From assembly GCA_977016875.1 (NCBI GenBank), contig CDRNST010000118.1:2356001-2420000 (forward strand): a stretch of DNA of 64,000 bases, written 5' to 3'. The notes under the pieces are model-generated. The model did not search any database, was not told the DNA's origin, and saw only the letters and a program-made list of their open reading frames with translations. Positions within the stretch are counted from its first letter, which is position 1, and each line of letters begins with the position of its first letter. Positions 50,456 to 64,000 of this stretch are shown here, piece by piece. This DNA comes from Pavona decussata (lineage: Eukaryota). The position numbers and the translations under genes were made by a program.

Positions 50456-53400
50456 ATGGAGGACGGGTTCAATTATTCTGAAACTTTTGTCCTCGGAATC
50501 GACATTGGCACGACTTCGATCAAAGTATCTTTGTTGGCTGAAAGTACTAGAGATGTTGTTGAGAGTTTTAGATGTGAAACAGAGGCAAATATTTGTGGTG
50601 ACGAAACGCACTTTGCAGAGCAAGATGTGACAAAAATCCTGTCCATTTTAAACCATGCCCTTAACCGATTGTCATCGAAATTTCTAGGCAGAGTGAGTAG
50701 AATTGGGGTTTGTGGACAGATGCATGGCTGTGTTATGTGGAAAGGACAATCTTTCCAGGCTTTGAACACAACTGATGATATTCTGGCTTTCAAAAACAAT
50801 GCTTCTAGTTTAATAACATGGGAAGACAGGAGATGTCATGAGGAGTTTCTTTCCACACTCCCCCGTACACAGCAAACGGTTGCTATTTCCACCGGTTTTG
50901 GGTGTGCTAGTCTGTTTTGGCTTCAAAGAAACCATCCTAGTCTTCTGGAACGTTATGACTGTGCTGGAACCATCATGGATTTTGTTGTGTGTATATTGTG
51001 TCAAATGGACAAGCCTTGTATGTCTTCTCAGAATGCTGTCAGTTGGGGATATTTTGATGTTGATAGCATGACCTGGGAGTTGGATCTGTAAGTTTGTAGA
51101 TAGCAGGGACACATGTTGTTGTGGTACACTCTTCTTTTTATATAAGAAAGTCTAATAGGCCTTATCACGGTTTTCGACACCATTTTGACAAGTAGGCAAA
51201 CAGGCTTGAAATAACTGTGTTTGTGGGAAAATCCGATGTCAAATAATTTTCATAAAATATTGTTTCTGAAAAATTCTTGAATTGGAAACTTTTGGCATTA
51301 GAAAAAGGATTTTGAGAGAAAAAAAAGGAGGGATGTAGCTGTGCCAGAAAGCCTCCAGTTGTGTTTTGAACTTTCCATACATTTGCTTGTATAGCGAACC
51401 AGCCATAACCTGCTACTAAAAATAGTTCGCAGGGAAAAAAACAGGGAATTGTATGAAGATTATAACAATAATATTACTATTAAGCGAAAAATGCTGTTAG
51501 TATTAATTAGTTGAAATGGGCGATTGCCAAAAAGCAAAATAGTAATTTTGTGAAATGGATTGTAATTATACCTTAAAACAATTGGCAGTCACCCATTTCA
51601 ACTGAACAAAATAGTAATTTTACCAAAATTGCTTTTTTGCAAGATTTGAACGGGAAACATGTTTTCACCATAAGGACAACCAGAACATTAACTCATTGGG
51701 CTAAACCGGAATTTAAGCCATTCAATACTGAATAAACAGGCTCACTTCTTTAACTTCCTTTTTACGTCTTTTCTAATTACAGCCTTAAAAGTGCAAATTT
51801 TCCCACCCATCTCCTGCCAGAAGTGGTTGAGCCTGGTACTGTGGCTGGTAAACTTCAGAAGTCTTTCTTTGGCATTCCAGTTGGAACTCCTGTGGGAGTG
51901 GCCTTGGGGGATTTTCAGTGCTCTGTGCTTTCCAGCACATCCCAATTAAGTGATGCAGGTATAATTCAAACATTCATATTTGAAAGGTCTACAGCTGTGC
52001 ATATAACTAGCCTTAAAACTCTTTTTTTCTCTTTGTTTTCTTTTTACAACATAATTTTATATTCTATATTTAATTTGCCCCACGCTTAAGTTCCAATGTC
52101 TTTCCTAAAGGACAAATTCTCGACTTCAGTCAATCACCTTTCATGCCTTGCAAACATTGATATAATACAAAAGAAATGTGTTTGAAATATTTCCCCACTC
52201 CCTGGGCACTGTACATTTATTTATCAAATTCCTGGGGTATGCCCTTCAAGGACTAATAGCTGACTATATTAGAGGACTCAATCATAACCATTCAAAGCCA
52301 CTTATGTAGCCCTTTACCCATGATATATTGGGAGACTGGTTCTTAGCAAAGTGGATCTCAAGAAACTCACCAAACAAGTAGATATCAATGTGAATGCTAC
52401 CATCATGCCACTCAAGTTATTGACAGTAGTGTAATAAAATTAAATATAGTAATGTTGTGTGGTGTTGTCTAAGGCTACAACTCTGGGGGAGGTATGCCAT
52501 GAGCATATCCAATTGACTCATATTAGATATCTTGAAACTCATTCTGGGAGTATGGTACGCTACTTGTAACAGTCCACTTATGTCCAGAAATGCACCTAAC
52601 CCTGATTTTGGGTACTTTATATAAGACAGACCTTTTTGTCATTTTCATATGACTTCATGTTCGACAGAATTATTTGTGTTTTAGTAAGAATTTAGGGTAG
52701 GGGACGCATTGTGATGTCTATCATACAGTTCATGCATCTCATTAGCATGCATTTCTGGACATATCTCTGACAGTCTAAGCTGGGTCGGGCATAAGCTCCT
52801 TGAAAGAGTAAACCCAAGATTCATTTACCATACTAGAAAAATATCTGCAATAGCATTTCTGATAATGGTATTCTTAATGTCATGATTAAATTAAAACACC
52901 AAAACAGAAGATCATTTTTGATTAAAACAAAAAACGATGGTTAAAAAAAATATGAAGTTTAGTACCCTGGGATAATATGCAATCACAACGCAAATTGACT
53001 TTTTTTCCACTTTTTTTTTTTTATTACTGTTTTAGTCTTTAATATTGGCACTGGCTGTCAGCTGGCTGTGGTCATTCCTGGGGATGCCTGTAATACAAGT
53101 ACTACTCAAGCTCATTGCAGTCTAGCTGGAGACATCACAAATGAGGCTGCAGTAAAGGTGCTTCCTTTCTTTCGAGGAAGGAAGGTCATCACAGCAGCAT
53201 CACTTTCAGGTAATAATTTATTACATGCCATGAAAATTTGTTCCACAAATTATAACAGGATAAAGTATAGTTGTTTACTGGAGTCAGTTAGTATGAGGTG
53301 TCAGAGTTTAGCCATGAGCAACTAGGTCAGTAATTATTTATTGTAAAATGTTTGTTGACATTTGTACCCTTAGCAGCAGCTAGCACCATCCTTGAAGGCC

Positions 53401-54649
53401 CAGGGATAGCTGGTTGGGACATGGTGAAGATTTCACAGACAGAATCAGTAGCTAGCGAACTTTCACCTGTGAAATCTTCATCCCATCCCAGTTGTCTGCC
53501 CCAGGGTCTCTGCGAATGCAAAATTAGCATGTATGCACAAATTGAATGGCGTCAAATTATGATGATGTGGCAGTGTTGAATTAACCCCTAACGCACTTGT
53601 CAGGTCCATCTCAAGGATAATGCAGGCACTAAGGTAGGGATCCATGAGATTGCTGCATTGGCTATTTTGCTGAAGTCTATGAAGGGGCATATAGCGTTAG
53701 GACAGTCAATGTGCATTTGAACCAAGTTTGGGGTTAGCTTGTATGTAGAGACAGTGATTACTACTTCAGTTGGAACTATACAACACACTTTATTGACATC
53801 AGCTGCTTTATTTATAAGTTACAAGGTATACAATTATTCATGTAAAAAACTAAAAGGAAAAACATTACAGGAAAGGGTGTTTATATATGTTTCCGACCTT
53901 TGTAAGTTTGTTCTAACCTAGGTCAATTTTATCTAAAACGGTAAAGCTATCCTGACCAATTGCAGGGTCTGTCTGTGCACTACAGGTAATACTGAAGGTA
54001 AACAAGATAACATTTGGAATGGCATTAATGGGAGCTGTGAACAGGACATTTTCAGAGATAATGCTCTCTTTGTCAGAATGGGGATAGAATCAGTTCCCAG
54101 GGGTAATCTTACCCAGCAACAATCCCTCCCCCTTCCCCTTGATGGACACTACCAGGTGAATGACAAGGTTTCTTTCTTTCAACAGGTGGGAACATTTTTG
54201 CTACTTTTGTCAACATGCTGATGTCATGGATGAAGGATCTTGGAATAAACAACAGCCTTCCATCTACAGATAAACTTTATCAACAAATTCTTGATTGTGC
54301 TGACAAGAAGGGTTCAACTTCACTGAAAGTGATTCCAACATTATGGGGTGAACGACATACTCCAGATAAAAGGGGGCAAGTAAGCAATCTTACATCAGAC
54401 AATATTTCTCTGGGTGATGTATCACTTGCACTTTGTCAAGGACTTGTGGAAAACTTACAGGGGATGATGTCAAAGGAATTCCTACAGTCCCATGGTATTC
54501 AAAGGATTGTGGGTACTGGAAGTGCACTGATGAAAAATCAGGTTCTTCAGAAACAAGTTGAACAGGTTTTTGGATTACCGCTAGTGTTGATTGACAGTTC
54601 AGAAGCTTCAGTCGGAGCCGCATTGGCTGTCATTTCAGAGTGCAATTGA
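50456..54649 (+). CDS. SHPK: Sedoheptulokinase (FGGY carbohydrate kinase family), 4 exons: 50456-51087, 51783-51958, 53036-53209, 54186-54649; 481 aa
   Basis: LGIDIGTTSIK, GVCGQMHG, LITWEDRRC, STGFGCASLFWL, SSQNAVSWGYFD, FPTHLLPEV, GVALGDFQCSV, VFNIGTGCQL, AASLSGGNIFATFV, LWGERH, GTGSAL. All junctions are GT-AG and phase-compatible (632+176+174+464 = 1446 nt). Confidence 0.93.
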
Positions 54650-54953
54650 CATACGAGAAATGTAAATTAAAGTTCATTTGGAATATATAACTGATTCTAG
54701 CAGCTTTCCTTGTAGATATCCTTGAGGTCTCATTGAACATTTGTGCTGAAAATTGTGCGTTCGCCTTTAGGCTTATAATGGTACAGTTTAAAATGTGACT
54801 AAATCAGTAGCTATTTATAATAAAAAGGGTTTACGATATTAATAATGAGGGACCGAAAATTTGAATATACGGCGTAAATGTATCAAGGTGCCTTAGAACA
54901 CAAATCAGTATAGTGACCGTTATGTTTTGACGTATGTGTAAAACAACTAATGT

Positions 54954-55287
54954 NNNNNNNNNNNNNNNNNNNNNNNNNNNNNNNNNNNNNNNNNNNNNNN
55001 NNNNNNNNNNNNNNNNNNNNNNNNNNNNNNNNNNNNNNNNNNNNNNNNNNNNNNNNNNNNNNNNNNNNNNNNNNNNNNNNNNNNNNNNNNNNNNNNNNNN
55101 NNNNNNNNNNNNNNNNNNNNNNNNNNNNNNNNNNNNNNNNNNNNNNNNNNNNNNNNNNNNNNNNNNNNNNNNNNNNNNNNNNNNNNNNNNNNNNNNNNNN
55201 NNNNNNNNNNNNNNNNNNNNNNNNNNNNNNNNNNNNNNNNNNNNNNNNNNNNNNNNNNNNNNNNNNNNNNNNNNNNNNNNNNNNNNN
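54954..55287. other. Assembly gap (334 N)
   Basis: Run of N. Confidence 1.
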
Positions 55288-56295
55288 TCTATATTTTATT
55301 TTACTATTAAAATAGTAAAATTACGCGCCGCGGTGTACGTGAATACAGTTCACGAGAAATGAGAAACGTTATTTGGCCCCATAGGTTTTATGGTGGCGGA
55401 TCGAAAATGGTTTCAATTTCGAGGTGGTTTACCTGCTGCGACCGATACTTGGTCGCAATTCCCTGACATGGAGATAAGATATAGGCAGGTGGCCTTCAGT
55501 AGTGAAATGCTCGACCACTGGAGACCAGGGACGCTTTTCATTTGGCAAAAATTTTCGGTTTAACGGATTGAAATGTAAATGGCACGTGCGGATAAAACTG
55601 AAATGAACCGAAACAAATGGACAACCTTTGGAGGTACTCCATTTTTTCCTTTCCATTTGCACAAAATTTCAATTTTCATTTTGTTGTCTTCCTGCGCCAT
55701 CACATAAGATTTTTTTTATCTAACAATGAGATTGCAAGTTTGGAACGACTGGACTGTTTCCGAAATTTGTAAACGGCGAAAGTTTTGGAAGGAAAAGCGT
55801 ACCAGGAAAGTTCTTTGGTTACAAGATAATATTTTCATGACGGTTTAAATTTTCAGAAATTTGGGTTTGGCAGCTGGAGAGCACGGTCTTCCAACAACAA
55901 TTAAATTTGATTTCGTCAATTTATGCTGGCAAAAATCGATGGTAAAGTGTTCCACTAATGTGATTCAAATTCGGGCATGAACTGGCAATTTATGCCGGCT
56001 AGAAACAATAGAAGACATAATATGACACAATTTCAAAAATCAAGTAAGAGATATAAGATTTCATACAGTCAATTAATATTATGTCCATGTACGGTGATAG
56101 TTCCTCAATAATTCAATTTCAAAAGTTGTACCTAAAAACCAACATGTACTAAGTATATACATTGTTCGTCAAAACGGTAAGCGTTTATTTAAACTGAATT
56201 CTAATAAAAAGAGGAGGCCATGTTGTATCCGATTGACAAACACTAGCTGAATAAGCTGATACGCACCCGTTAAAACGTGAGTGTCGCTTTGAAAT

Positions 56296-59200
56296 TTAAG
56301 AAGGTAATTTGGACGGGCATTTGTCCTGCAGGTGCCCCCACTGATGACATTCGCGACAAAAGCTCTCTTTATCTGAGTGAGCAAACCAGCAACTTCTCCC
56401 ACGCGTACAACGATTCTGGTAAATACATGCTTCGCCTTTACGAGGATTTTTAAAAAACTTCTTTTCGTCATCAGTATGGCCATATGTGCACTTCAATCTG
56501 TGCTTACAGTGAGACCGGTATTTACATTGTTCAGAGTACTGTTGGTTTCTTCTCTGATTCTGTCTCAGTTTGACTTCCTGAAACCCTTTCGAGTCATCTT
56601 CTTCATTCTCTGTGACCCATTCATTTAGGTCTAATTCTTGCTGATCTCGTGTTTCAGCTTCACCTTTATCAGACTGAAGAGAACCGCTCAAGCCGCTTAA
56701 CTCTTCATCAAAATCTTCCAGTGCTTCAAATCTATTTGTGAGGCAAATTTCTTCCTTTAGTGCACGATATTCTTTGCAGTAAGCTGGATAGTTGACAACC
56801 TTTCCTGGGTATTCCTGTTCAAGGCGTTGGAAGATCTTCTCAAAATGATCTGTAAAGTCTTTGTCATCTTTCGACTTTACTTTACTTGCAAAAAGTAGGA
56901 AGATGTCTCTAAAATCTGATGGACTGCCTAGCTTTTCCGGCCCAATGAAACAGAACTGAAAGGGCCAGCCTAACGTTTCACTGAGATTCTTCTGCCAAGC
57001 TTCGTTGGGAGTAAACTCAAAATCCTTTATGACAGCAGATCGTGAGTTCATCCTCGATGTGATTTGCTTCTCATCAAATTTGAAATTTGTGAATGAGATA
57101 TCCTGTAGGTGGGAATCCAAGGGGAAAATTGTGAGTAATTCTGGATTCTCCTCTGCGAGATCTTTAAGCGCCTTAGAGATGCCACTCTCCCACATCCAGA
57201 TTTCGAAAGACCATTTTTTGGCCAGGCCTTCTTTTATTGCTGGTATGACATCAGCATCTCCACTAACAATGATTATTTTTCCATCGGCGACACCCCCATC
57301 GGAAACAAGAGCGGTTATGTCGGTAACCATTTTGTGGTCAACCTGTTTTTCTTTGTTGGTGAATCTGCTTCGTTTACTTGTGATAACTTTCCAACCACGC
57401 TCTCTTATTTTCTTCCAAACAGTGTCTATCGGTGGAGGTTCTGATCCGTATAGGACACCCCAGGCAAGTTCTCTTCCATTCGCAACAACGTCAGCTACTC
57501 TTCCGATGTCCAAGCGCAACCTTGGATCCTCTACGCATTTCAAATTTAACTGTTTGGCGGCAAGCTTTTTTGCCTCGATCCACATATTTGAATCATCAAC
57601 ATAAATGAAAACGTGCTCGTCACTGGATAAAAAGGGTTCGACTGGCTCGACAAACTGAGGGCACCATGGACACTTCATCATATTTATTGGCACGTTTGTT
57701 TTGTATAACTCCACGATGAGTTTCAAAATACAATCACCACATATCATGTGCTGATCCGTGTAGTTTTTACACATCCAGTACTTGTGATAACTTGTCAGTT
57801 CTTTGCAACAATTTTCATAATTGCAATTCCCTCTCGCAAGAAAACCTGTGAAGCAAAGGCATCTTCATTGAATTATTTCTTACCAGGAGTGGGCTAATTA
57901 AAGGATCCGAGTGCCTGTTCTTTTTTCTTTTTTTCCTTTTTTATTGTGATGTCGAATTTGTGATAGAATTACGCATCAAACGTGAGAAAAAGTTCAACAT
58001 TGCAACTAAGAAAATAGTGTTTATATCCTTGTCCTGAACTATTTTCGCTTTTCTTATTATGTAGCATTTAATAAATTTAAGCAATTTTGCTTATTTCCAT
58101 CGCACCTCGTTGATTGTAATCATGTGCAAACCCCAGTGAAATAATTGTATTGATAACCCCACTACAAATTATGATGAATTCTTGTCGATATTTCTTGGAC
58201 CTTGGAAGCATGTGTTATTGCTTTCTCAGTGCAGAAAACATTCGTGATTTAATGCGATTTTCGACGTCATCTTGATTCGGCAACCACTGCTAAAATTACA
58301 GGTTTTGGCTCACCTTAAATCTCTGTGACACCGCTCAAAATTCAGTCGACGAACTTGCAAAATTTAAAATTATGTTTAGAAGATATCCCAGTTATACAAT
58401 TTATTTGCCAAAAAAATTACACCATTCTAGGCGTTATCGTGTAAGTATGTTCAGCCAAGCGCAGAGCACCCAGCCGCGCCGCTCAACGATTTTAAAAGTT
58501 TAGACTAATTTTCAGAGTTTTTGCGAGGATCACCAATGGTGGTTTTATCTTTCATCACCTTATCCATCCTTGTATAGTGGGTTCAATAACCGTCGTTTTA
58601 CTAAAACTAGGATTCAAGAAATGTCTGTCGATCTCTTGGCTACAATTTACCCCGTAAAAACTTTTTCGTGGACAATTAGGTGTTTTACTGTGATGATCGA
58701 TAGTCGACTGGAACGGCGGCAGGGTTGAATGCAGGTTTCCGAAGGCTGAATGCACACATCTGGGAATGTGAACGCCGATGGATTGGATTGACAAATTTTA
58801 TACTTTTCTTCGATGACTTCAATGGTGGAGTCATTTAGCCGTACAATTTGGCCATAATGTCAAACGTTTGATCACCTGAGAGGATGATTTTGACAATAAT
58901 GAATTTTATGATATTACTGTATGCTTTTAAGAGTTTTGCTGCATTTTGACCAGCCTGCAGGCTTGTAACATATACAAACATGATAATATGCAGCAAACAA
59001 TGCATACGGTGATGCCTGACCAAACCACCTCATGAAAACATTACCTATCAAGGCAAACACGTGTACGTTCGGAAGAATTTGGGCATGGGAGTTTATGTGA
59101 ACTTGAGAACACAGAAATGGGTGTACTTTCAAATTATCCCAAACTTTTTAAATGCTCGTATCAGTATTAAGTAGCCATTTTCTATTTCCCAAGAAAAAAA

Positions 59201-60521
59201 CACTCTGAATTTCTTATCAGAAAAAAATCAGTTGAAGAGTCGTTCGTTGTGGTCGTTGAACACGTTGTTATTTGATGTTGCTGATTCTGGACACGTATCA
59301 ATATTAAGTGTTGTCGGATTTTGGTAAACTCAGGATTATCAACACTGTTCTGACTGTTCAAGGATCGGAGAAGATGCAAAAATTAAACCATAGAGTAAGA
59401 TTCATAGATTGCGAAAAATTGCAAAATAAAATGGTCAAAACCTATCAGTTAACGCTCAGCTGTTACCCAAAATACTAGAATCTACAAAACCAAGAGACTA
59501 TGTCTCTTGACAAAACCCATTTTATAATAACTTGAGAAGTAGACCATAACAATTCATTAAACGTGTTACACCAACTCAAAACTAATAACATACCGATAAT
59601 ACATTTATTCCTTAACTGCGAGCTAAAACTTCTATAAATCAGTGTATCATTTCAAGATTTTCAATACATCATCCAAGAGTTTAATTTAATTTAGCTCAAT
59701 TACAGACAGATTTTTGGTAGTTTACGGCAACAGACTCATAAAATTAACATGACAAAAAATGAAAAAAAAAATTCTTTTTATGCGAGTAGACGCGGAATAA
59801 TGCTGCGACACATTATCGTTCGCATTAATATCCTACATCCTAACCAAGTTTTTCCTTCAGTTCGCGTTAACCTAAGATACTTCAATAAACTAAAAAGTTC
59901 AATTTTTAACAAGGTGACAAAATAGGAAATAAATAGTGGCAAAAAGATAAGCAAATAAAACAAAACTAGCCATGTTGGAACGGAATGACGAACACTGTTT
60001 GCAGGTAGAATAGAACAAGAATTTGTCCAAGCCTAATGTGGCAGCAAATCTTTCTTCCTGTTTCGGAAACAAACAAAACATCTTTCTACACGACCAGGGA
60101 ACATCATAGGAAACATTTTTTTCCGCAAAGACAGTAAAGTACGTAGATTGTTTCAGAAGTGAAAGCACTGTTTCCACAAAAAGACGGAAGTACTTTGTAG
60201 TTCCTTTGTCGAGCGACATCATCGTGAAGGTCCCAGTACGAGGAATTGTTTTCAAGAAATGAACTGAATTGCTGCTATACCTTCATATTAGACCATAGTT
60301 TAGACTCCGAGCGACTTTTAAATTTTCTTTAGTAGTTGTTGAAGGCTCGCTGGAGAGGCTTAGAATGATCGAAAATGGTGCATAATGCGAAGATGGCGCG
60401 ATACTCGATTCTTCCCTGTTATATTTGTCTGGACATAAAAGTGTTCAGCAATAAGAGCTAATAACGAAATCTTACCAAGGTTTCCTTGATTTGAGTAGTT
60501 AGCAGGGCTACGACTGGCCAT
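56296..60521 (-). CDS. RING-like + NYN (LabA/DUF88 PIN-fold) nuclease + 2x CCCH + CCHC zinc-knuckle protein; exons 60521-60476 and 57845-56296; 531 aa predicted
   Basis: NYN motifs IYVDDSN, YGSEPP, KEKQVD, IIIVSGDADVIP and WSFEIW. C-terminal CKYRSHCKHRLKCTYGH, CIYQNRCTRGRSCWFAH and CRECHQWGHLQDKC. The frame stays open upstream of the ORF-track Met to an acceptor (gcttcacag|57845). A phase-matched first exon with aagaccATGG and G|GTAAGA lies at 60521-60476. The large exon is secure; exon 1 is less so. Confidence 0.82.
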
Positions 60522-61507
60522 GGTCTTCGTGTAGTTCAAGTCTCCGTGCTCATCTAAGTTATCTATCAAACGATGTTGGTCATGTGACCTTCGTGGTTGT
60601 TAAACGGCGAATACCCGACGACGAACGAAGTGAATCGAAGGTCCGACATGACCGGAAGTTGGTTTATTTTCCTCGCAATCTTTTTTTTAAACTAAATGTT
60701 TAAATCAGGACTTTTTAGTCCATGAAAGTTTGAATGGGATTTTTGGTCACTTGGGTTATTTTTCTGCGAACATAACATGTACACACCCTATCCTGAAAAT
60801 AGTTTTAAAAATCCTTTTTAATGGACACCTTTTTAAAATTATGCAGTGGAACCTCTCGTAACCAACCACCCAAAATGCCAAGATTTAGTGGTCGCTTACG
60901 AGAGTCGAACCAGAAGGGGTCTCTTCCAACCGAAGTTGGGGCGCACTTCTTTAAATCTGTAGAGGACTTCTTAAATAAAACTTCCCTAAGGGGGGTGGGG
61001 TAGACTGGACTAAAAAGAAAATCCAGGCTCAGCTAGCGCTCAGAAACATGACGACCATAGTTCTGACCACCCGACAAAGTGTTCTACGCTAAAGCGTGGG
61101 CCCGGTTGTTTGAAAGCCCATTAACGCTAATCCCCGACTTAAAGATTAACCAAGGTTCTTATCTCGCTCGTTAAAAAATGTTTAAAAAACGAATTTTGGG
61201 CTAATGGTGAAGAAAAGTCGTAAGTCATAACTTACAGACAACAATCTTTGAAAGAATCTTTATTGATTAGTGATTAAAACTGAGTCAAATTAAAGTTCAC
61301 TTTAATCCGGGATTAAGTTTATCGGGCTTTGAACAACCGGGCCCTGGAAAGAGGGAGAGAGGAGTTGCCAAGGCTATGTAGAAAGCGTTTCCGCGGGTTT
61401 TTCTGCGCGAGAAGCGCGTTTACCCTTTTTCCACGGCATCAAACGTTTGTGTCCCATAATTCCATGCGCCTCAAGCATCACGCAACATTTTCATCGTGGA
61501 TGGAAGG
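60522..61507. promoter_or_regulatory. Divergent promoter region between the NYN gene and GLOD4
   Basis: Head-to-head starts ~1 kb apart. Near-palindromic E-box-like ggtcatgtgacc at ~60578 and ETS-like accggaagt at 60651. Confidence 0.45.
61099..61343. mobile_element. Harbinger-type MITE in the GLOD4 upstream region
   Basis: ggcccggttgtttgaaagccc ... gggctttgaacaaccgggcc, flanked by GTG/CTG (degenerate CWG TSD). Confidence 0.8.
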
Positions 61508-64000
61508 ATGTCGGAAGAGATGTCTCACCGACGTGCTCTTCATTTTGTGTTTAAGGTTGGAAATAGAAACGGAACTGTGAAATTCTATCGCGAAATTCTT
61601 GGAATGAAGGTAAGAGATTAGAATGCATGTATTGATTCTTCTGAATAATGTATTCTTTAGGTAACATGGACCTGTGGTCACGCCTAGCCTTATTCAATAT
61701 TTCAGTCTTTAAACTCAAATGGAACCATTCATACTCAAGAAAAAAGAACCAGAAATAACATCCGAATGAAATTGAAAAAATAAAATATTAAATAATAGTG
61801 ATCGGCTCAAAAGGGTTTTTTTAGCCGCGTTGGTGTACGTGTAAGAAGACGCAATTAACACTGGAATTGAAAATGCATTTTGTGATTGCATGAACCGGAA
61901 ATAAAAGCTGCAGGACACCTTTATTTTTATCTCGAATTTTTGCATGGTTACCTATCTTGATTTTTTGCATGCATGCAACATATTCAGTAGAAACGTTTGG
62001 AACAAAGTTATCCAGTAGAATTTTCTGTAGGTGAAAAATGCCTTTTGTCATAATATAACTCATACACCGGAGACCTAAATTAAAAAACTGCCTTCTGAAT
62101 GAAGTTCAGTTCACTGTTCTTATTACTATTAAGGCTGATTTAGACGGTACAACTTTTGCTTACGACTGTCGCTTGCGATTTCTAGAGCATGCGCTGCTTG
62201 AGTCATGCAAAAAATCGCACACAACTCTCGTCATTCAACATTGCCTATACCTTCGATTGTCATAAGTTTTTAAAACATGTTTTAAAATCCTACGACATTT
62301 TTTATGATGTACACAACAGTCGTAGGCGAGTTGTAGGTTTGATTTACACGAAACAATTTGTGCCTTAGGCCTGTTGTAAGCTTGTTAATAATAATAATAA
62401 CATTTAGTGTTGCATGCGACAAGGTCATACCTTGTAAATCGCCCTTATATAGTCCTTAATAATCTTTTTAGACCAGTACTCCTATATATGTCAACTCTCA
62501 GTCAAAACCTCTTGTAAAATTGTGGAGTGATATTAACTATTGTAAATAGTTAATTTATTAACAACCTTTCAATATCATGCACACTATTCTGGCATGCGCA
62601 TGGGAGGAAGGGATGGCATTGTGGAGTATGCATTCTTGTCATGCCTTCAGCTGGGTTGTTATGGAGACTGTTACACAAATCCACTTTGGCTTCAAGTCTG
62701 TTAAGGTAGATCACATTTGATGAAGCATTTTGCTGCCTGGTGACTGTTTTCAATTTATTACTGTTTTGTATTTTAGGTTTTACGCCATGAAGAATTTGAG
62801 GAGGGCTGCAAAGCATCATGTAATGGGTATATAAAAACATTTACCTTGAATTTAATACCTCAGTGCCTTAAGTTATAACATTGCATGATTTCCTAATTTG
62901 TCAGTGAAGCATTCTGATGATGTTGTTTGTTGACCTACGTTAAATTCTTTTTCTCATTAATTTGTTTGGGTTCTTTGAAAAAAACTTCTCACAAATCATA
63001 GCTATAAATAGACCTACATAATGTACCTGAGTTGTGTGTGTTGACAAACATGGAATTGAAGCAAATTCTAGGATAGTTGCTTTCAGCTATCCTAACAACA
63101 ATGTCCTTTAGATTTTTAAGATAACCAAACATGGTCACCGGTAGGAAACATTACTAACATACTTTGGTCTCTCTGAATACTACCTCAGATAGCACAAGAG
63201 GTGTAAAAATTGTTTTGTGAAATAAACTCATAACATATTAACAAATTATCTCTTTCGGCCTGTAGTGAGCCCATTATTTAAGTGACTGTCATCAGTAACT
63301 TGTCCTTACAATGTCACTACTTGATCAAAGACAAGTCAAATAGCCCACTTTGAAAATGAGTGATGGCCTGGGTCGAGAGTAACTGCCCAAGCGATTGTGG
63401 GATTGTTTGGGGGGGGGGGGGGGGAGATGCTGAATGCGAAGATAATAGCCAACGTCTCCCAAAACCTTCCCACAATTGCTTGGGCAGCTATTCTTGACCC
63501 AGGCTATCACTCTTTTTCAAGGTGGGCTATTCTCCTTGCTTATGAAGTACCATTATAATAAATATACAGGAAGCAGTACTGTGGAGAATATTTCTGTTGA
63601 TATGAGGGCTTAACTTATTAGTGTGTTTTTTATATTCTTAATATTGAACGGCAGGGGTCGTAAAGGGCTTAATTATATTTCAAACTTTAGCTTGATTGTT
63701 AGGTTTTATCAAAGATATAAATTTCTCAAATGAACTGTCATTAAAGCCTGATATCCCAGTATGAGGGCAATACAAAGAAAAGAAATGTTTAATTTTAGAT
63801 TTTCTTTGGATTGCCGTCTTGTGTGGAATGTGGCCCGGGAAAGTTCATTTCAAGGAACTTACATCCATTCTGCAGCAAAATTTGGTCATTTTTACGATGA
63901 ATACTTTCTTTATTGTCAGACCTTATGATGGGAAATGGAGTAAAACCATGGCTGGGTTCGGATCTGAGGATGATCACTTTGTGGTTGAACTGACGTACAA
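61508..64000 (+). CDS. GLOD4: Glyoxalase domain-containing protein 4, 5' part; exons 61508 (or 61520)-61609, 62777-62826, 63920->64000
   Basis: The spliced translation [30 protein letters not shown]|[17 protein letters not shown]|[26 protein letters not shown] matches the GLOD4 N-terminus. GT-AG junctions are in phase. The ORF track misses it because the exons are short. Confidence 0.93.
62131..62446. mobile_element. Degenerate MITE in GLOD4 intron 1
   Basis: aaggctgatttagacggtac ... ataccttgtaaatcgccctt imperfect TIRs in a TAA/TTA context. Confidence 0.55.

Follow-up and report, generated by a model that had tools for sequence, protein, structure and literature searches.

What kind of protein is encoded between positions 56296 and 60521 of a 64,000-nucleotide stretch of the genome of the coral Pavona decussata (NCBI GenBank assembly GCA_977016875.1, contig CDRNST010000118.1, positions 2,356,001 to 2,420,000 of the forward strand; the whole stretch is hereafter the window)? 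A preliminary description made from the sequence alone had read the locus as a RING-like domain, an NYN ribonuclease domain, two CCCH fingers and a CCHC knuckle in one chain, and had proposed that the protein combines RNA recognition, cleavage and ubiquitination. We find that the locus holds a transcribed gene with two coding exons, termed here the RING-NYN gene. Its product is probably a zinc-finger-guided, metal-dependent RNA endonuclease, a member of an uncharacterised family which is conserved in marine invertebrates. The positions of all features are collected in Table 1.

Gene structure and transcripts

An open reading frame (ORF) of 492 amino acids (aa) lies at 56296-57774 on the minus strand. 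The preliminary description had extended this ORF to a splice acceptor and joined it to a distant first exon, giving a protein of 531 aa, and this model agrees with the letters of the locus. The frame is open 5' of the ATG of the ORF, through GFLARGNCNYENCCKELTSYHKYWM, as far as a polypyrimidine tract and a cacag/G acceptor (57846/57845). The start codon of exon 1 at 60521 has an A-3/G+4 context, and gtaag directly follows the last exon base, 60476. The phases of the two exons fit, with a Gly codon split by the intron into the last G of exon 1 and the "gt" at 57845-57844, and the spliced minus-strand product amounts to 15+1+515 = 531 aa. Residue numbers below refer to the translation of exon 2 (515 aa, 56299-57843, minus strand), to which 16 is added for the full protein. 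Searches were made with exon 2 (56299-57843) or exon 1 (60477-60521, minus strand) separately.

Sequencing runs of "organism A" contain approximately 27% of the words of a 4.5-kb stretch, which is roughly its exonic share. Placed along the locus, the contigs from runs X1 and X3 give cover that is confined to 55900-57846 with zero depth in the intron, and in the DNA-like run X14 all 30 bins of the locus are covered. One 946-nt contig from X3 stops at 57846 and continues with nine more letters, AAGGTTTCC, which are the last bases of exon 1 (60477-60485) and occur at one other place in the 64 kb. Because this contig jumps from 57846 to the exon-1 9-mer, the 60476/57845 junction that had been predicted is directly supported by a spliced, transcript-like contig; the support is one contig, the "RNA" label of X1 and X3 is the tool's guess, and contigs give no expression levels. 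The acceptor (CACAG followed by GTTTTCTTGCAAGAGGGAA) and the in-frame, RING-coding extension are also kept in three of three orthologous loci of other species (L008, L009 and L010). The RING-NYN gene is a real, transcribed, two-exon coral gene.

A BLASTP comparison of the exon-1 peptide with the N-terminus of the Montipora relative gave no alignment, the peptide being too short; by eye only, the window protein and the Montipora protein have "NLG" in common before the RING. Just before the main ATG (60521), in the presumed 5' leader, lies a short upstream ORF, ATG AGC ACG GAG ACT TGA (60553-60536, minus strand).

Domains and conserved residues

The domain order of the protein is RING, NYN, a middle alpha/beta domain, an acidic linker, two CCCH fingers and a CCHC knuckle. 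A caveat applies to these assignments in that Pfam recognised the NYN alone in the window's own protein, and family profiles were required to detect the RING and the fingers. The RING, CCCH and CCHC ligands and the acidic residues of the NYN show little or no variation among 19-63 homologues with identities as low as 32%, and because they are kept to this extent the motif set goes beyond chance. The Pfam search of the window protein gave no transposase, integrase or reverse transcriptase domain and no LOTUS/OST-HTH or RRM match. Matches to DUF4796_C (E 0.09) and GEP5 (E 0.06) were below the Pfam threshold and were disregarded.

The NYN domain matches PF01936 over residues 88-230 with a score of 35.4 bits (E 1.8e-8), above the cut-off of 24.2, and the same model matches 19 of 19 homologues (best E 2.7e-12). 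An AlphaFold model from a 63-sequence alignment (mean predicted local distance difference test score, pLDDT, of 79.9) shows a predicted PIN-like alpha/beta fold that is superposable on solved members, and the fold assignment rests on this structure together with the Pfam match. The domain belongs to the MARF1/LabA (PF01936) type and not to the Regnase/ZC3H12 type. The acidic motifs on which the earlier reading had relied (VDDSN, EKQVD and SGDAD) are all present in the window protein. In MARF1, D178, D215, D246 and D272 are needed for the Mg2+/Mn2+-dependent cleavage of single-stranded RNA, N181 and S270 are also conserved, and the catalytic residues are placed where strands beta1, beta2 and beta4 end and where helix alpha3 begins (PMC6217404). 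The corresponding elements here are D83-x-x-N86 at the end of beta1, D112 after beta2, D169 starting helix 168-181 and S194-G-D196 after beta4, a mapping made by position and not by residue-level superposition. These proposed catalytic residues are invariant or at least 90% conserved in the family. With equivalents of the four-Asp metal site kept, the NYN looks catalytically competent from its sequence. The family profile of the NYN did not retrieve MARF1 from the PDB sequences and reached 2qip at E 0.3 only; a designed repeat protein matched in the same search was spurious. A protein atlas search returned generic bacterial or fungal NYN clusters only.

The acidic linker, the two fingers and the knuckle proposed earlier were all found, with conserved ligands. 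The finger profile matches the tandem CCCH fingers of Unkempt (E 7.4e-5), TIS11d (9e-4) and TTP (2e-3), as well as Nab2 (E 0.0044), ZC3H12A and, weakly, Roquin, and there are profile matches to the CCHC knuckles of TUT7, Air2 and retroviral nucleocapsids. The spacing of both CCCH fingers is C-x5-C-x5-C-x3-H, whereas that of TTP is C-x8-C-x5-C-x3-H.

Between the NYN and the linker lies a conserved domain with an invariant W283 and P294, the latter two in the motif (G)WPFQ. Searches of PDB sequences, Pfam and the protein atlas returned nothing that matches it, and an alignment to RRM_1, represented by 20 RRM exons from its own genome, scored an hhalign probability of 0.1%. The aspartate-kinase and PGDH rows from Foldseek, with a root mean square deviation of 17-21 Å, give no evidence of an ACT domain in this region.

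The RING is cut off by the start of the 492-aa ORF, as the preliminary description had pointed out from the Cys/His pattern. Its spacing in the window protein is C-x4-C(C)-x11-C-x6-H-x2-C-x2-C-x19-C-x2-C, and the eight ligands are invariant in an alignment of 19 sequences. Of the 63 relatives, 37 show a C3HC4 pattern; most of the remainder are gene calls that begin at an internal Met and lack the N-terminus. Distant members have the textbook spacing, C-x2-C-x10-C-x2-H-x2-C-x2-C-x15-C-x2-C. The window copy is atypical relative to these in its C-x4-C and in a 3-residue insertion which produces C-x6-H, outside the canonical x1-3. No Pfam RING model matched single sequences (the window protein and 19 homologues). 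A profile of 35 N-termini matched TRIM32 (E 2.5e-5) and PCGF5 (E 1.6e-4) among the PDB sequences, and the N-terminal profile of the family also matches TRIM56, RING2/BMI-1, BRCA1, Hakai and RNF125, nearly all rows being RINGs. A model of the isolated RING has a pLDDT of 88 with a helix starting at Cys5/Cys6. Foldseek with the 73-residue RING model gave no significant match; its top rows, all with E > 0.3, were ZZ domains and the zinc module of SIRT2. Judged by its ligands and profile matches, the N-terminal C3HC4 cluster is a true RING, with a probable cross-brace zinc fold.

RING domains contact the ubiquitin-conjugating enzyme (E2) through an Ile/Val before Cys2, a Trp/Leu in the helix, a Pro after Cys7 and a basic linchpin after Cys8. 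In the family alignment most members carry K, D, N or S ahead of Cys2, and the helix position, occupied by L, Q or R, is not conserved. The Pro after Cys7 is present in some members only, and no conserved basic linchpin follows Cys8. Ubiquitin ligase (E3) activity of the RING is possible and appears doubtful, because in most members a polar or charged residue stands before Cys2 in place of the hydrophobic E2 contact.

Two variations of the RING were also seen among close relatives. An insertion of 2-4 residues between Cys3 and His4 occurs in the window copy (YTD, 57748-57756, minus strand) and its close orthologues, and in the orthologue L010 Cys7 is changed to Tyr, with a Cys two residues further on restoring a C-x2-C pair.

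Evolution and proposed activity of the family

The 602-Mb assembly holds one full copy of the RING-NYN gene and two distant paralogues on another contig. The paralogue L002 (G000:C197:334253-334942, plus strand) is a 227-aa ORF with 32% identity, an NYN (Pfam E 1.8e-9) and a partial RING-like Cys/His cluster, with no fingers within the same ORF, while L003 (G000:C197:221935-222450, minus strand) contains three TAA stops and is pseudogene-like. The locus is colinear with the three orthologous loci, in L009 and L010 from 51647 to 59585 with 73-94% nucleotide identity. Word-based protein searches returned 167 relatives for the window protein and 176 for the distant member P0119, more than 250 altogether and nearly all from ENA or Logan assemblies, and the family is kept from corals to amphioxus. 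Relatives with a name are called only "uncharacterized protein" (Montipora capricornis), "hypothetical protein" (Oculina patagonica), "Hypp6051" (Branchiostoma lanceolatum) or "uncharacterized LabA/DUF88 family protein". In several marine assemblies family members are adjacent or on the same contig (L004 1577-4737; L005 1-4731), with up to four on one 75.6-kb contig, and these side-by-side relatives suggest lineage-specific tandem expansion.

We compared evolutionary rates as pairwise Nei-Gojobori ratios of nonsynonymous to synonymous substitution (dN/dS) for the window gene and its three orthologues. The ratio is 0.34-0.62 for the whole gene, 0.07-0.41 for the NYN domain and 0.15-0.44 for the first half of the RING, rising to 0.70-1.11 for the RING helix, loop 2 and tail and to 0.61-0.85 for the finger region. 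It is not significantly greater than 1, and the zinc ligands are unaltered throughout this comparison. The X3 contig, which derives from a different sample, hardly differs from the window in the NYN region and carries approximately 24 substitutions in 119 nt at 57619-57737, with 16 aa replacements (residues 36-68) that spare the ligands. The contig has 23 changes in altered codons and 9 in unaltered ones. The DNA-like run X14 has the reference form only across this segment. The X3 variant may represent either a strongly diverged allele or a tract of gene conversion. Comparison of these rates indicates a strongly constrained nuclease core that is flanked by fast-changing interaction surfaces. 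The fast RING helix and finger surfaces, with the tandem arrays elsewhere, suggest a conflict-type pressure on partner or target specificity. At the sequence level the fast change fits a role in conflict, and is proof neither of such a role nor of positive selection.

We propose that the RING-NYN protein acts as a guided nuclease. At the C-terminus, the tandem CCCH fingers together with the CCHC knuckle would bind single-stranded RNA, the flexible acidic linker would let the fingers deliver this RNA to the NYN domain, and the MARF1-type NYN would cut it in a Mg2+/Mn2+-dependent manner. The RING would most likely serve as a partner-binding or oligomerisation module, with ubiquitin transfer as a possible function.

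Other explanations of the locus were weighed against this proposal. It is very improbable that the gene is non-functional, be it an ORF derived from a transposon or retrovirus, a pseudogene or an artefact of reading through an intron. The match of the CCHC profile to retroviral nucleocapsid knuckles and the stop codons of the paralogue L003 would agree with such an origin; however, there is one full copy with an intact frame and purifying selection on its NYN, the locus is colinear in three other species, the transcript evidence is spliced, and conservation of the family extends to amphioxus. A transposon ORF, which the preliminary description had kept in view, is ruled out by the single full copy, the colinear synteny and the absence of transposable element domains. 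A role as a housekeeping or germline mRNA-decay factor, acting like MARF1 or plant DNE1 in decapping-linked decay or the clearance of oocyte transcripts, is a possible though rather unlikely reading. The RING would then serve as a scaffold and not as a catalyst, much as the Slx1 RING binds Slx4, and the raised dN/dS would reflect relaxed constraint on the surface. Against this stand the lack of LOTUS/OST-HTH domains or a recognisable RRM in a protein that is much smaller than MARF1 and not its orthologue, and also the tandem expansions in other lineages and the hypervariable expressed allele, both of which would be unusual for a core decay factor.

A further reading overlaps with the guided nuclease and adds an active E3 to it. 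The protein would be a full "sense-cut-tag" factor against viruses or retroelements, whose RING ubiquitinates itself, cofactors or RNA-bound proteins, and it could be likened to a single-chain analogue of ZAP, KHNYN and TRIM25 or of Roquin and Regnase. Conserved domains for all three activities are present, the RING helix and fingers evolve fast, the expressed allele is highly divergent, relatives form tandem arrays in other lineages, and a division of labour among ZAP, KHNYN and TRIM25 is documented (PMC11685948, PMC11670115). We nevertheless consider this reading unlikely, as the E2-binding hydrophobic residue before Cys2 is lost in most members, no linchpin after Cys8 is conserved, the gene is single-copy in Pavona decussata and dN/dS does not significantly exceed 1. 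Of the three activities first proposed for the protein, recognition and cleavage are well grounded in its domains, and ubiquitination stays a possibility, with E2-contact residues that are not conserved.

Comparison of the guided nuclease with known systems indicates both likenesses and differences. MARF1 (Limkain b1) has the same NYN class (PF01936) and combines it with RRMs and LOTUS domains, whereas the RING-NYN protein lacks LOTUS/OST-HTH and RRM, uses CCCH and CCHC modules instead, adds an N-terminal RING and is about one third of the size; it is not a MARF1 orthologue. Regnase-1/ZC3H12A-D and N4BP1/KHNYN follow the same logic, a PIN-like metal-dependent endonuclease joined to an RNA-binding CCCH or KH, and this class acts in the decay of immune mRNA and viral RNA. 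The PIN subfamily here is a different one, and the protein does not have the Regnase arrangement of an RNase_Zc3h12a PIN with one CCCH directly after it. The comparison to a "fused Roquin/Regnase" made earlier is apt as a functional analogy and not as homology, since the NYN is of the PF01936 (MARF1/LabA) type and not of the Regnase/ZC3H12 type. Roquin-1/2, Makorin and Unkempt have a RING and CCCH fingers in one chain, as here, and Unkempt is the closest to the finger profile; these proteins have no nuclease, their RING is an established or likely E3, and the RING-NYN protein has no ROQ domain. In the antiviral complex of ZAP, KHNYN and TRIM25 in vertebrates (PMC11685948, PMC11670115), CCCH recognition, an NYN nuclease and a RING occur together, as they do here on one chain. 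Those three proteins are separate, belong to different families and are restricted to tetrapods, and the likeness is an analogy at the level of domain class only.

A computational study mentions in passing that fusions of LK-nucleases with Zn-knuckles occur in some cases (Anantharaman, Zhang and Aravind 2010, PMC2848206), and the RING-NYN family may be among those architectures. The passages concerned describe no RING, tandem CCCH, middle domain or functional study. Likewise, the relevant passages of a survey of the PIN superfamily give MARF1 as NYN, RRM and OST-HTH and do not mention a RING-NYN-CCCH-CCHC architecture (PMC5499597). The literature searched gave no description of a RING, LK-nuclease, tandem CCCH and CCHC combination, and we provisionally regard it as undescribed; together with the names of its relatives, this agrees with the earlier impression that the gene is not a named animal gene.

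The family combines the three domain types in one small protein that is mostly encoded by a single exon, is expected to be easy to express and occurs from cnidarians to a chordate. CCCH-guided NYN/PIN nucleases (Regnase, ZAP/KHNYN) and the RING-CCCH proteins Roquin and TRIM25 are central to post-transcriptional immunity in vertebrates, and MARF1 protects oocytes against retrotransposons. The family can be used to test directly whether the coupling of RNA recognition, cleavage and RING function is older than the multi-protein complexes of vertebrates, and the RING-NYN gene is a candidate for coral antiviral or stress biology. As a tentative and rather improbable extension, the protein could be an ancient, invertebrate-wide restriction factor in one chain, its fingers recognising foreign or retroelement RNA, its NYN cutting this RNA and its diversifying RING coupling to ubiquitin signalling or to a fast-evolving partner. 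If true, it would be a one-chain forerunner or analogue of vertebrate ZAP-KHNYN-TRIM25 and Roquin-Regnase, retained by corals and amphioxus and multiplied in tandem arrays in other marine animals.

Feature positions and neighbourhood of the locus

Table 1. Features of the RING-NYN gene and its product, in window positions; residues are those of the exon 2 translation.
Feature	Positions	Strand	Details
Exon 1, coding part	60476-60521	minus	46 nt; ATG at 60521, 15 codons + 1 base; GT donor 60475-60474
Intron	57846-60475	minus	GT...AG, 2630 nt; no depth in X1/X3, full cover in DNA-like X14
Exon 2, coding part including stop	56296-57845	minus	515 whole codons, 57843-56299
3' untranslated region	55900-56295, continuing below 55900	minus	X1 and X3 contigs span 55900-56362 unbroken
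C3HC4 RING	57661-57825	minus	residues 7-61; ligands C7, C12, C25, H32, C35, C38, C58, C61
Fast-evolving second half of RING (central helix, loop 2, tail after Cys8)	57619-57737	minus	from dN/dS and the variant contig
NYN / LK-nuclease domain	57094-57618	minus	residues 76-250; proposed catalytic D83, D112, D169, D196 with N86, S194
Conserved alpha/beta domain, family without match	56734-57093	minus	residues 251-370; beta-alpha-beta-beta-alpha-beta; pLDDT ~75-96
Acidic disordered linker	56551-56733	minus	residues 371-431; pLDDT < 50; length varies in alignments
CCCH finger 1	56476-56526	minus	C440-x5-C446-x5-C452-x3-H456; ligands invariant
CCCH finger 2	56377-56427	minus	C473-x5-C479-x5-C485-x3-H489; ligands invariant
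CCHC zinc knuckle	56317-56358	minus	C496-x2-C499-x4-H504-x4-C509; ligands invariant or nearly so

The flank at 51647-55903 is 88-94% identical to L010 5650-9407 and includes a gene with a weak FGGY_C match in the orthologous loci. Exon 2 and approximately 1 kb of the intron are only 85% identical to L010, diverging faster than their surroundings. On the other side, a glyoxalase-domain exon lies at 61496-61618 on the plus strand (weak Pfam Glyoxalase match, E 0.007), head-to-head with the RING-NYN gene and approximately 1 kb upstream of its exon 1. The protein of this neighbour presumably resembles GLOD4, and the two genes may share a bidirectional promoter.

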